Positions 30,451 to 37,104 of a DNA stretch of 39,434 nt are shown one piece after another; position 1 is the first letter of the stretch; each line of letters opens with the position of its first letter. Source of the DNA: Polymyxa betae A26-41 (Eukaryota > Protista > Endomyxa: Phytomyxea); contig RBZT01000383.1 of assembly GCA_003693705.1 (NCBI GenBank), forward strand, positions 1-39,434. Direction: 5' to 3'. Below the pieces are notes generated by a model that had not been told where the DNA came from, did no database searches, and saw only the letters and a program-made list of their open reading frames with translations. Made by a program: the position numbers and the translations under genes.

Positions 30451-32018
30451 ATGAAAGGCTTAGAGAAAGCCTTAAAGGCGGAAGCTGCTGAAATTGCTTC
30501 CCGATGTACAATAAGCAAAATCTCCTGTGATGGAGACGTTCAGGCTCACATCTTGGCGTGTACGCTGGAGCTATTTAGGACTGAAAAGACCTACTTAACG
30601 AAATTGAGAACTGTAAACTCTGAATTCCATCGCCGACTGAGAGCCCATCTCTCGTTTGACGAATCTGATTTCCCGGAACGCTCTGCAGACAGTTTTGATG
30701 CTATGTTCGATTACGCCCATGGCTTGATTGACTGTCATGAAGAGTTACTGATTCAAATGAAAGGTAACTGTGTGGCTTTGTTTTTCTTGCTGTTTAACTT
30801 TGCATTTCGGTGTTGTTCTTTGAATGCACCTGACAATATATTTGCTTTTCAGCGGCGGCGAAATCTTCACGTCTAATTCGATCTCTTGACGATGTCTTTG
30901 TGAAATTTATCGGGAAATCAAGGGAAAAATACATTGAATATGCTTTGTCATATCCCGATGTCACTAATTTACTAATCAAGCATCAGCGTAACAATCATAG
31001 ATTCAATGAATTCATATTTGTAAGCGAAGTATGTGCCGGCGAAAGTATCAACTCGTTGCGCATGGCACCGATACAAAGAAGTCGGTAATTCTCTCCTCAT
31101 TGACTATCATTATCGTTTTCCACCATTTCATTTTTCAACACGAGTTCCGTTTTTTATTCCTTATGCGATATTTCAAACTGAAAGCTCTGTATTGTAGTTC
31201 CCAGGTATAAGCTCATGCTAAGCGAATTGCTGCAGCTGTGTGGAGAATCACCATCAGAGGCTACTGCCATCCAGGGTTGGATTTCTGCTTATACGGAATT
31301 TTGCCCTTCCAACCATTCTAAAATTTTGCAGTGGCTATCAATGGATGTCACAATTTAATGCAAGAGATTGACGACAGTATTAACCAAGGCGAAAAGATAG
31401 CACAAGTCAGGATTATACAGGATGTATTCTTCGAAGGCAACATCAATTTGATGGACTGCAGAAGGATGCTTATCAAATCTGGCGAGCTCACGAAGGTAAC
31501 TCTTCTTCTTTTGAAATGCAAGCTATTTTTAATTCACCGAACTGCAGTTGTTCAATCGACAGAAAGCCCATATGTCTAGAGGGAAACGACACAAGTTCTT
31601 TATCTTTTCTGATTGTCTTCTGTATTCTGATATTGAAGGAAAGCATAAGTGCAGGCACGTTATACATCTATCACAGATAAAGATAATTGAATCAGAGAAC
31701 GATACAAACACTATCAAACTGATTTCAACAATCAAGGTCAGCTTTTACTGTTTGAAAATCAGCTTCGATGCTTGTCCTTTGTTATATGTTTTGGAACTGA
31801 CAGTATTAACCGCTTAGTCGTTGAGACTGTTACCGGATAGCAACGAGGAAAGAGCTGAATGGATAAACGCTTTGCAGTCAGCCATGGCAAATTGTGACCC
31901 ACTTCCTCCAATTACTTCTGCTCGGGTTGGTCATACAAAACATAAATTCTTCCATTTAAAGTCTTGTTCGACAGAACTTCGAAACATGCATCAAGTCGTT
32001 GAACAACAATACTGCTAA
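30451..32018 (+). CDS. Dbl-family RhoGEF (DH-PH), multi-exon; ends approximate
   Basis: DH motifs ELFRTEKTYLTKL and LRMAPIQR/PRYKLMLSELL; PH motifs LIKSGELTK, HKFFIFSDCLLYS and EERAEWINAL. Confidence 0.88.
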
Positions 32019-32815
32019 AAAGGATCGGGGATATAGCCGCTCTTTCTCAATGACACTGTTAAACCAAGACGGTTCTCATTTGAGGCGTCGAAGCTCGTTA
32101 CCATCGATATGGCTAACTCCTGGACGCATAAGATCGTTGACAACAGCATTATTCGGTAGCTCCATATCGTACAAGCCTGCTTTGACTCACATTCTTACAA
32201 ATGAAGCATAACTCTTCAAATCAACTTCAACAGTAAAACATATTTATTTGAGGCGTGTAAAGAAGTCATCTCAAACCTGAAAGGCAATCAGGGACAGCTC
32301 TAGAAAGAAAGTTGAACTGAAAGCAAACTGTGGTTTGCACTTTCAAAATTTTTCTGGTCCACAGATTCAGACATAATTCTGTTACTCTGCAACACACACC
32401 ACGGAACTCTCAAGCACGCTAAGCGCAGGGAACATTGCCAGCACATTTATCAAGTACCGACCATTACGACACAACATCAATCCAGAATCAATATACTGCT
32501 TCATCACTAAGACATTTCTTGAACACTTTGAACATTGGAACTTGATCGGGATGGTTGGACTAGCACATCCGAAATGGCAGGCTATTGCCAGTTTGCTGAA
32601 GCAACCAATTGGAGCCAGGCAACCATCATTCGAAAGCGAACATACTCTGTATTTAACACCGTAAATATTCTGGACTGTCTGTACTCTATAATGGGAAAGC
32701 TGCATATCACAGGTAGAACTGGTGGAGGAGCGGCCTGCCCTATATCATTAGGGTACACATTTAACAGAGGCCCCTCGATATTTGCATTTTCGCTTCTTGG
32801 GCTGATTGGTTCGGG

Positions 32816-35526
32816 ATGGAGTCGTCACCATACGCCGCCGAGCTCGAGCGCGTATCTCGATATGCCCATACCAAGCTGGACATCATTCTTAAGGACATGC
32901 TTGAGCAGTTGTTCTTGCATACGCCTGACGACCCGATTGATGTGAGTTGGGCTCGGTTAGCAGGCGCCGCCAATTCAATCGCTGTAGTTTATGATTGGGT
33001 TCTTAACCGATTATAAAGAACGTGGATCTAGTATGGAAGAAGGCAGTGGATATCACTCCCACCGCAGCAGCCGTCCTCAAATCTTTGTTGATCCAATGGA
33101 TATGACAGAGGAAGCCCCATTTGCTGATTGTCAGTTGTCCAAAGCTCGACGCAGAACAGCCGTTTCTGCAGAGCCAGTATAAATTTTTTTTCGTGCATTG
33201 AGACTATTTTAAGCACAAATTAGGTGGATTTTATGGCAGCTGCCGATGCTCCAGGTCAAGTCATCGCAAAAACCACAGAACAGGTTCAACGAATTCAGCA
33301 ATCTGTTCGAAGCAATATTTTATTTGCTTCTTTGAGCGCCCAGCAGATGCAGCAAGTTGTGGATTCCATGCAAGAAATGCGTTTCCCAGTAACCTCTCCG
33401 TCGGGTTCAGATCAATGTCTTACATTATTTTGTAGGCTGGGGAATCAATTATAAAGCAAGGCGAAGAAGGTGATTACTTTTACGTCCTCAATAGCGGGAT
33501 TGCGAACTGCTACGTTTCGGAAGGCGATGAATCACCTAAATTGGTATTTACGACGTCAAGCAATGTGCCCTCTTCCCTTATATTCTCAGGTGAAAACATA
33601 CAATCAGGAAGGATCTTTCGGGGAACTGGCACTTATGTACAATAGCCCTCGTGCCGCTACTATTACCTCACAAACCGAGTGTGTTTGCTGGGCAGTCGAT
33701 AGGGTGACGTTCCGAAAGGCAAGGACCGAGAAGCCAAATATTTTTGTTTCCAACATCATTTGTCAGGTCCTAATGGAAACAACTTCGTCCTCCAGAAGAA
33801 AATACGAACAATTTTTAGGCGATGTGAAAATTTTAGCATCACTCGATCAAACGGAACGAGCGCGGATCGCTGATGCTCTCGTAGAGCAAACCTTTACCGA
33901 TGGGGAATATGTTATTCGTCAGGGTGAGGTCGGAGACGTATTCCACATAATCGTTCAAGGGCATGCCAAGGTTCTGATGGGTTTTCTAATTTCGCTTCAT
34001 GGCTCATCATTCTTAGGTCACAAAATCAGTTGATTTTCAAGACGATGATGTTACTGTGCTTGAGCTAAACCCTGGAGATTATTTTGGAGAGCTTGCGCTG
34101 ATCAATGACGATGCACGAGCTGCCAATGTTATTGCTGTTGACGATCTCACAACAGTGACATTGGATCGAGGCGCATTTAACAGGCTGCTGGGTCCAATTG
34201 ATCACATTCTGAAGCGCAACCAAGATAACTACAACTTAACTGAGCAAAGAATTTACAACCAGAAGCTACAAGTGGATTGGTTACAATATTTCCTCAACGC
34301 TCGCTAATCCTGGCTTAGGCTGTCAGTGGGGTTCACATTGACCACGATAATGAACCTCGGCCAGAGGTTTCGATGAGGCGACGTCGTACTGCAGTATCTT
34401 CGGAACCAGTCGCCGGTTAGTGATCTGATCTGCCAAAACTTCTGCACTCCTAACTTTCTTCTAGCAATGGTGTCATTGGATTCTATTGCAATTTCTGACG
34501 CTGTCGTTCCAAAAACACAAACGCAACGTGCGTCAATTCTTAAATCGATTCAAGGAAATTTCCTATTTGCCGGTTTGGATGCCTCTCAGCAAGAAATTAT
34601 CATCAATGCCATGTTTGAGAAGCAGTTCAGCGATGGAGAGTATGTCATCCGGCAAGGGCAGCCTGGGAACCATTTCTACATCCTTTCTCATGTGGGTGAT
34701 CTACTGTTTCGGATCTGCAAGTAACATCAATTAGGGAGAAGCTGAATGTTTTGTACAAAGGAAAGACAGTGAATCTCCAGTTTTGGTTAAAACATATAAA
34801 GTAAGAATTAGCAGAATCGGATGGATCACTTTATAACCCTATCGATAAATAGGCTGGGGAGGGCTTTGGAGAACTTGCTCTTATGTATAACAGCCCAAGA
34901 GCCGCCTCAATCCGTGCCAAAGGGGATATCAGTGTCTGGGTTGTGGATCGTCCAACATTCCGAAGGGTGCTTATGGATACAACCAGTCAGAAAAGGACGC
35001 TGTATGAAGGTATGGAGCTGAGTTCAGAACTACGTTCCCTCTGTAAGCCCAATTTTACAGGATTTCTTGGCAGTGTTCAGATTCTTAAATCTCTCGATCG
35101 AAACGAGATTGCCAAGGTTGCAGATTGCCTTTTAGAAAAAACTTATCAAGCAGAAGAATACGTCATTCGACTTGACGAACCCGGAGACAACTTCTACATT
35201 GTCGTGGATGGTGAAGCAGTGGCTACGAAACGCCTGCAAAACAGTACTGAAGCTCAAGAAGTTATGCGGTATAAGCGTGGTGATTACTTTGGAGAGCTAG
35301 CGCTTCTTAATGATCAGGTTGGTTGTTACTTGAAAACGTAGCCTATATTACTTAAACCTTGCAATAGCCGCGCGCGGCTAATGTCATTGCTGTTGGCGGC
35401 CCGCTCAAAGTCGTAACATTGGACAGAGCCAGTTTCGTCAGGCTATTAGGTCCATGCGACGAAATCCTGAAGCGCAACTCCTCAGCATATGTTGCTGTCG
35501 ATGCAACTCTTTATCATGATTCGTGA
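32816..35526 (+). CDS. PKAR: PKA regulatory-subunit-like protein with two tandem modules (D/D, two inhibitor sites, four CNB domains)
   Basis: D/D-like [25 protein letters not shown]; sites [10 protein letters not shown] (33147) and [11 protein letters not shown] (34376); four phosphate-binding cassettes [60 protein letters not shown]. The modules are joined in frame through intron 34272-34318. Confidence 0.88.
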
Positions 35527-35864
35527 ATTATATAAAATCATTTGGTCGTGCTTCTATTTATCTACTTAACCTATTACCGAGCGTAATGTTTAGCAATTTG
35601 TTGGCCGTACTACTGTTTAGGAAGCTATACATTACAGCAATAGCTGTGAGAAATTTGGTTAATTCATTGGATTGATTCAACATCCAGAAAATGCTATTCA
35701 ATCCAGTCCTATCTTTGATTAATGATTGCAAGATCAATCCTATAGGAATAAGCCAACACGGCTGTCGACTCTCCCTATTTCATGTCCATCTTCATTAATT
35801 TATTGTATACGATAGCTGTACATCTCCACTATTATTATACCCAATCCTCCGTCAGCTCTCAATA

Positions 35865-36775
35865 ATGACATCTATACGATCAAAAACACTTGCCATTTTT
35901 AATGTCGTCATCGCCCTATCATGGTTCCAGACAGCAGCGGTATGTGGTCAATGATGAGATTGGAATCTCTGTAATATTCTGCTTAGGTTAGTCATGAGGA
36001 CCACGACCGTCCTTTTTTTCCAACGGGACGTCGTAATGCAATCTGTGCAGAACCTACGTCTGGTTAGTTTCTTGTTCAAAATATTGGTATATTTGATTCT
36101 AAAGGCCAATTTAGTCCTGATGGCGATGCGAGTTAATCCATCACCGCCATCTCCAAACATTGTCGTACCTGAATCAGAAAACCAGCTCGACTTTATACTA
36201 GAAGCATTTGAGAATCATTTCCTTCTCCGCTGTCTAGACCAGGCTGAGAAAAAGCAGGTTGCGAAGGCTATGAATGAAGAAAAATTCAACGACGGGGACT
36301 ATGTTTACCGAAAAGGAGACGATGGTCGACTTTTCTATGTTCTCTCTCAAGCAGAGGCTGATGGAGGAGCTGAAAACCTCGATCAGGAAGCGAATGTTAC
36401 GAAGACCTACAAAGTAAGAAGCCCAAAATGCCATGCTGCTATCGCGTAATAGCTTGCCTATAGGTTGGGAACGTTTTCGGTGACAATGCTCTTGTTAACG
36501 ACTGCAAAAGAGCGGAATCGATTCGTGCCAAAGGCGCTATAAGCGTTTGGGCTCGGAACCGTTCCACGTATCGAAGCATTATCGCAGCCTACAATCAACA
36601 CAAACAGGAATTAGAGGAAGGTACGTTATCCTACTCGATGGTTGCTTGTGATTTCAAAGTGATATCATCTCAATCAGAAGATAATGCTAACGACTATAGC
36701 AGTTTCAACAGTTTCTCTCTCCCTGACAATGAGCTCGACGATATGAGTGACAGTGAGGAAAACATGGAATCATAA
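35865..36775 (+). CDS. Signal-peptide protein with a PKA pseudosubstrate (TGRRNAI), a single CNB domain and an acidic tail (234 aa)
   Basis: Five exons, 35865-35939, 35987-36062, 36115-36413, 36464-36620 and 36678-36775, all GT..AG and phase-compatible (705 nt, no internal stop). Similar to the second module of the upstream PKA-R gene. Confidence 0.82.
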
Positions 36776-37104
36776 AAGAATAATAAAACCTATCCAAATT
36801 ATCGCTGCCGATGGATTATTGACTTCACAAACGAAGACCAACGCCTCGCTAACAAGATTGCCAAAGGTGACTTTGCAGCAGAAACTCTGTAGTCTGGAAG
36901 CACAACGAATGAAATTAAAGAAATGGTCCGATACGTTTTTCTTTGATGAAGCATGAGGCCATTTTCAATATTAAAGACATTATAATCCAATGCAGTTTTG
37001 TTATGATCCCATCGGTGCGCTGCAGCAACGGCTAAATTGCACTCGACGGTGCCCAGATATCCACAAATCGACCACAGAATCGAATACACAGCAGTGCTAT
37101 TCGA

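Follow-up and report, generated by a model that had tools for sequence, protein, structure and literature searches.

A single gene of Polymyxa betae A26-41 encodes a PKA regulatory (R) subunit in which the whole inhibitory unit is doubled within one chain. P. betae is a plasmodiophorid (Phytomyxea, Rhizaria) that parasitizes sugar-beet roots. Canonical R subunits have one inhibitor site and two CNB domains and dimerize through a docking-dimerization (D/D) domain, and Ala at the P-site makes the inhibitor a type I pseudosubstrate. In the window analyzed here (the 39,434-nt contig RBZT01000383.1), positions 32816 to 35526 are one gene with one fused, spliced mRNA, whose product carries a predicted D/D domain followed by two cassettes, each consisting of an inhibitor site and two CNB domains (Table 1). 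The component parts are all familiar; the layout is real, transcribed, conserved, and recurrent.

A three-frame reading of the window gave a 12-intron model that runs uninterrupted for 712 aa from the ATG at 32816 to the stop codon ending at 35526. The introns are 43 to 52 nt long, 11 with GT-AG borders and one with GC-AG borders (33719 to 33766). The GC-AG intron lies in the A1 hinge, is in frame and without a stop, was removed in all four transcript runs, and is missing from the gene of Plasmodiophora brassicae. The transcript data came from two studies and consisted of contigs from four public runs (X4, X7, X1, and X2), placed on positions 32400 to 37100. These are assembled contigs lacking a library record; they are spliced and hence RNA derived all the same, and they demonstrate the fused mRNA, whereas minor short isoforms could escape them. 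All 12 predicted introns correspond to joints in spliced contigs of X4 and X7, and one X7 contig (contig 8; 2,355 nt, beginning at 32646) contains exons from both halves. A preliminary description of this locus, made from the sequence alone, had proposed one gene and one chain, with an RNA check across 34271/34319. The joint between the halves (34271 to 34319) was found in all four runs and both studies, with 95 to 96 nt on its shorter side in three of the runs. X1 and X2 represent a different strain, with 30 substitutions relative to the gene (22 synonymous and 7 nonsynonymous codons), none of them within inhibitor sites or cAMP cassettes. Two separate genes are ruled out by this joint together with the P. 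brassicae gene, which has no intron at the junction, so that a single exon runs through it. An in-frame TAA (34305 to 34307) lies inside the P. betae junction intron, so its retention would yield a 403-aa single-cassette R subunit; the contigs of the four runs showed no sign of retention.

Table 1. Features of the double R subunit gene (window positions, forward strand)
Feature	Position	Strand	Details
Double PKA regulatory subunit gene	32816..35526	+	13 exons, 712 aa; intron model and spliced contigs
D/D docking-dimerization domain (predicted)	32825..33023	+	aa 4-54; interrupted by intron 32942-32987; profile of orthologues
Cassette 1 (inhibitor site, CNB-A1, CNB-B1)	33144..34241	+	aa 95-382
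Inhibitor site 1, RRRTAVSA	33147..33170	+	P0 = Ala100, type I pseudosubstrate
Phosphate-binding cassette A1	33617..33658	+	Glu, Arg, Ala retained
Phosphate-binding cassette B1	34083..34124	+	Glu, Arg, Ala retained; Pro before Arg replaced by Ala
Extension of B1 C-helix	34227..34271	+	aa 378-392; conserved across rhizarian orthologues; modelled as one long helix in P. brassicae
Junction intron	34272..34318	+	47 nt, phase 0, CTAAT branch point; not in P. brassicae
Linker, variable, predicted disordered	34319..34375	+	aa 393-411; last residue Met411 (ATG 34373)
Cassette 2 (inhibitor site, CNB-A2, CNB-B2)	34376..35499	+	aa 412-704
Inhibitor site 2, RRRTAVSS	34379..34402	+	P0 = Ala417
Phosphate-binding cassette A2	34865..34906	+	Sequence and alignment to RIα
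Phosphate-binding cassette B2	35288..35379	+	Interrupted by intron 35318-35367
Short 3' UTR	35527..35560	+	Ends at a loose poly(A) tail in one X7 contig

Along the 712-aa chain, the order is D/D, RRRTAV (aa 96), CNB-A1, CNB-B1, helix extension and linker (aa 378 to 411), RRRTAV (aa 413), CNB-A2, and CNB-B2. The full frame, which ends before the poly(A) site, holds no kinase domain, and Pfam searches of the exons and of orthologues returned cNMP_binding as the sole domain and no kinase match. A PKG or other CNB-kinase is thereby ruled out; a PKG-like gene sits elsewhere, on contig C505. The two RRTAV sites (aa 97 to 101 and 414 to 418) align with RRGAI of RIα, and FGELAL...RAA recurs in all four phosphate-binding cassettes (aa 206, 330, 527, and 651). 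These results bear out the preliminary description, which had claimed this kinase-free order, Glu, Arg, and cAMP-type RAA in all four cassettes, and a type I Ala pseudosubstrate, now seen at both P0 positions. If the register is shifted, the RRRT stretch could also represent an RRxT site open to phosphorylation. Compared with a canonical R subunit, the chain has the inhibitor site, tandem CNBs, and D/D domain and lacks a kinase, but it departs from the plan of one site and two CNBs in having two and four. With regard to type I, the P-site residue is nonphosphorylatable, but there is no aromatic A-site cap at the position of Trp260.

The N-terminal 50 aa are assigned to D/D domains of the RIIa/Dpy-30 clan by profile comparison. 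Pfam RIIa/Dpy-30 gave no match to the single D/D exon, while a profile of orthologue N termini matched, as its nearest solved structures, FAP385 (9e-13), AK8, DPY30, and the RIIα D/D. Of 13 members, 10 had Dpy-30 matches and 7 had RIIa matches below the cutoff. The P. betae domain is closer to FAP385 and AK8 than to RI or RII.

Alignment to RIα showed that both cassettes have Ala at P0, preceded by Arg-Arg at P-3/P-2 and followed by Val at P+1. Both retain equivalents of the docking tip of the A cassette (L201, A202, and Y205) and of R241, E261, D267, R366, and Y371. Equivalents of the E200/R209 and E324/R333 pairs, Ala after each Arg, and the B-site Tyr cap are also present in both. At the position of the A-site cap (RIα Trp260), cassette 1 has Thr and cassette 2 has Asn, and both A sites may bind cAMP more weakly as a result. 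The position is nonaromatic in all three plasmodiophorids (P. betae, P. brassicae, and Spongospora subterranea) and is Tyr in the majority of rhizarian orthologues, Lapot and Nonionella among them. Other departures from RIα are Asn for D170 in A2 and Ser for K240 in cassette 1. Loss of the cap and loss of the Pro before the B1 Arg (Ala or Val also in the other plasmodiophorids) are common to these three species. The inhibitor sites and all four Glu/Arg pairs are retained in P. betae, P. brassicae, Spongospora, Leptophrys, Lapot, and Nonionella. Conservation of cassette 2 does not fall behind that of cassette 1, with identities to P. brassicae of 85% and 79%, respectively. Of the solved structures, RIα matched the sequence of cassette 1 best (E = 8e-70). 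An AlphaFold2 model of the P. brassicae orthologue folded the D/D helices and four CNBs, with a B1 C-helix of 29 residues (371 to 399) and a disordered region (401 to 446) comprising the linker with site 2; its pTM of 0.33 implies no fixed arrangement between the cassettes in that model. A Foldseek search with the whole model had Plasmodium PKG as its top match (TM about 0.29), which reflects CNB number only.

The arrangement is not an oddity peculiar to P. betae, as orthologues with the same layout occur in other rhizarians. One exon stretch was compared by phmmer with 1.84 billion representatives, followed by searches with database proteins and name look-ups; all database queries were exon stretches or database proteins, and the joined 712-aa model was compared locally only. 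The top phmmer ranks were multi-cassette proteins. Two-cassette orthologues were recovered from P. brassicae (PBRA_003949; CEO95183.1 and SPQ96369.1; 721/739 aa, 76% identical), S. subterranea (CRZ09813.1; 716 aa, 76%), Leptophrys vorax (51%), Lapot gusevi (52%), the foraminifer Nonionella stella (45%), and environmental sequences. Each of the nine introns in the P. brassicae gene coincides in position with a P. betae intron, and P. betae has three more, the junction intron among them. The helix extension after B1 is similar in Nonionella. A search with one database protein (P0041) returned no named single-cassette rhizarian R subunit above threshold, and Bigelowiella and Reticulomyxa were not among the matches. 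Two sequences labeled Ploeotia vitrea (P0157 and P0166) and one labeled Hirondellea gigas (P0158) fall within the rhizarian cassettes, where P0158 is the sister of Nonionella; they are probably rhizarian contamination of those transcriptomes and were not counted as euglenid or animal cases.

The preliminary description had called the duplication old because the halves share no intron positions. In the 12-intron model the halves, which are 52% identical, indeed have no intron position in common; this is weak evidence of age, and the case is carried by a cassette tree, which confirmed the duplication as old. A maximum-likelihood tree of 53 cassettes, from which unnamed nonrhizarian proteins and suspected merged gene models were left out, placed those of the rhizarian group in one clade (99/97), and a larger quick tree of 105 rows agreed with it. 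Within the clade, Phytomyxea and Leptophrys formed mirror subtrees, one of first cassettes (100/98) and one of second cassettes (98/88); the duplication is therefore older than the split between Phytomyxea and vampyrellids. Lapot joined the first- and second-cassette sides with weaker support, and the duplication probably also predates its split. The tree did not resolve the branching of the Nonionella and environmental cassettes, and the rhizarian double chains may have one origin or more than one. Cassettes of other lineages grouped by lineage, which indicates either several independent multiplications or homogenization within genes.

Among about 200 proteins scanned, 65 had at least two cassettes starting at an inhibitor-like position, a count that includes a few near-duplicates and the window protein and in which the divergent unnamed members are candidate R subunits; cassettes were <80% identical in 61, and a D/D was detectable in 24. 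Named cases outside Rhizaria, with two to six cassettes, came from Vitrella, Chromera, Perkinsus, three dinoflagellates, Fabomonas, Diphylleia, and Gefionella. Two proteins of Gefionella okellyi (P0001 and P0151; 3,779 and 3,876 aa) carry six successive inhibitor-plus-two-CNB cassettes at the C terminus. Two others (P0002 and P0004; about 2,650 aa) are very long proteins of repeated CNBs that lack inhibitor sites and a kinase, similar in size to the solved chain PCR12 (TGME49_219070; 2,736 aa). Three matches (P0005, P0025, and P0169/Cladocopium) with cassettes 99 to 100% identical were discounted as probably merged tandem genes.

The P. betae assembly as searched (27,085,814 bases in 1,001 contigs; the published draft has 1,001 contigs, 27,085,946 bp, and 45% GC [PMC6328671]) was queried with an exon of the gene and with bird RIα. 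Strong matches were confined to this locus and the PKG-like gene on C505, and no second R subunit was found in the assembly, a statement limited by its CEGMA completeness of about 89 to 91%. The assembly also has two PKA-C-like genes, one on C883 and one on C535; both carry a TWTLCGTPEY activation loop and a terminal FxxF, and the C883 gene is plain. On C535 (about 2760 to 4700, reverse strand; loci L038 and L059), Kelch repeats lie ahead of the PKA-C-like kinase and are predicted to be in frame with it via a phase 1 intron.

Downstream of the R gene, positions 35865 to 36775 (forward strand) hold a separate expressed gene with its own spliced contig, whose five exons have phases that sum to 234 aa without internal stops. 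Its first exon resembles a signal peptide and is followed by degenerate versions of the inhibitor site (RRNAI) and of CNB-A, the latter without the cassette Glu, and by an acidic tail. It is nearer to cassette 2 than to cassette 1, its four introns coincide with second-half positions of the R gene, junction intron included, and no counterpart was found downstream of the P. brassicae orthologue. Its product is a candidate secreted kinase-inhibitor-like protein derived from cassette 2. A PH-like coding stretch also lies near the R gene (window about 31500 to 32018, forward strand, and L050, 302 to 1808), and in P. brassicae a RhoGEF/PH gene lies about 3 kb upstream of the orthologue on the opposite strand; loose synteny is possible.

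By analogy with the known biochemistry of RIα, we consider it probable that each cassette is a self-contained inhibitor, with two catalytic (C) subunits restrained per chain and each of them released by cAMP via a separate B-then-A relay. Without cAMP, each RRTAV pseudosubstrate would enter the active site of its own C subunit, with CNB-A acting as a clamp, and the cassettes would hang on the long helix and flexible linker with no fixed mutual orientation. Binding of cAMP to the B site and then the A site of a cassette would release the C subunit of that cassette, and fixed differences between cassettes (the lost B1 Pro, Asp170 to Asn in A2, and the Trp260 and Lys240 positions) could give rise to two thresholds. 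This scheme assumes that one chain can sterically accommodate two C subunits. More tentatively, if the D/D dimerizes as in RI and RII, an assumption by analogy, two chains would form an R2C4 holoenzyme that could dock on an AKAP-like helix. This docking may be flagellar, since the D/D is most like axonemal FAP385 and AK8, a likeness that hints at anchoring in zoospores and serves only as a lead.

Other readings of the doubled chain fare less well. The cassettes might prefer different C subunits, the plain C883 and the Kelch-preceded C535 products, and so couple two kinases, which is compatible with restraint of two C subunits yet is a stronger claim. In the assembly, a single two-cassette R subunit is accompanied by exactly two PKA-C-like genes, and the cassettes have diverged to 52% identity while each nonetheless remained stable, as this idea would suggest; the inhibitor sites and A-domain docking tips are nearly identical, however, and so predict little selectivity, and we regard such a division of labor as unlikely. 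Slightly less likely again is a chain that holds one C subunit, with one cassette working at a time while the other is kept in reserve, buffers cAMP locally, or exerts allosteric tuning. Divergence at the A-site cap and B1 Pro is consistent with this, as is the linker of one orthologue (P0159), which extends about 8 residues past the helix and could crowd two C subunits. Yet the inhibitor sites and all docking residues are retained over the rhizarian tree, a pure cAMP buffer would not need a pseudosubstrate, and Gefionella retains six inhibitor-like sites.

It is improbable that the working forms are single-cassette subunits, arising by intron retention (403 aa, with the D/D), by a start at Met411 (without the D/D), or by linker cleavage, although splitting of the chain at the protein level or short isoforms would be compatible with the contigs. 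The in-frame stop in the junction intron, the Met that immediately precedes site 2 in each of the three plasmodiophorids, and the disordered linker of the P. brassicae model would suit such forms; against them, the assembled transcript is fused in every run, P. brassicae has no junction intron, and Leptophrys and Nonionella lack the Met. Gene models do merge tandem arrays, as in the three discounted database matches, but two adjoining genes or an assembly or annotation artefact can be dismissed with near certainty here given that the joint is spliced in both studies, a single contig crosses the gene, one P. brassicae exon spans the junction, and five other taxa have transcriptome-derived orthologues. 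Restraint of two C subunits per chain remains our preferred explanation.

Descriptions of the canonical R subunit give it a D/D, a single inhibitory sequence, and a pair of cAMP domains, and note that the N terminus varies (PMC11006142, PMC10959531). The P. betae chain resembles type I R subunits (RIα/RIβ; PDB 2QCS and 6NO7) in its N-terminal D/D, Ala pseudosubstrate, tandem CNB-A/CNB-B, and docking and salt-bridge residues, and differs in the doubling of the whole unit and the absent Trp260 cap. With apicomplexan-type PKG (Plasmodium PKG, PDB 5DYK; the relative on C505) it shares several CNBs per chain; PKG has a single autoinhibitory site, a kinase on the same chain, and Thr or Ser following the cassette Arg, whereas the P. 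betae chain has two inhibitor sites, a D/D, Ala after the cassette Arg, and no kinase. Among protist R subunits (trypanosomatid PKAR1/PKAR3, Dictyostelium, and Plasmodium), the N terminus and oligomeric state vary, but all are described with one inhibitor site and two CNBs (PMC11006142, PMC10959531). Trypanosomatid R subunits are cAMP independent, in contrast to the intact cAMP consensus of P. betae. The database orthologues with the same layout (PBRA_003949 and CRZ09813.1) are automatically annotated as plain R subunits, the doubling unmentioned, and the P. brassicae and Spongospora accessions appeared in no searchable paper. The preliminary description knew of no report of this architecture, and we likewise found no description of a doubled or multiple-cassette R subunit in the searchable literature, which leaves most subscription journals outside. 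It had also named an already common architecture as a ground for rejection; this is partly the case, because the layout spans rhizarian lineages and recurs with two to six cassettes in other protist groups.

A conserved doubled chain, with up to six cassettes elsewhere, would change the PKA stoichiometry rule. We suggest, with some reserve, that rhizarians and several other protist lineages may have independently arrived at a polyvalent holoenzyme with two to six C subunits per R chain (R2C4 here), released stepwise through differing cAMP sensitivity or C-isoform preference; such a holoenzyme would, if real, represent a second basic PKA design beside R2C2 and RC. Multi-cassette chains would offer a natural test of valency versus cAMP thresholds and cooperativity. 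This is the sole R subunit found in P. betae, the rhizomania vector, and its orthologues occur in the clubroot and powdery-scab pathogens. In Spongospora, a PKA type I regulatory subunit transcript, which may not be this orthologue, changes during spore germination (PMC8256667). Considering that PKA is absent from plants (PMC10959531), the doubled R subunit would be an unusual signaling node of interest for control.
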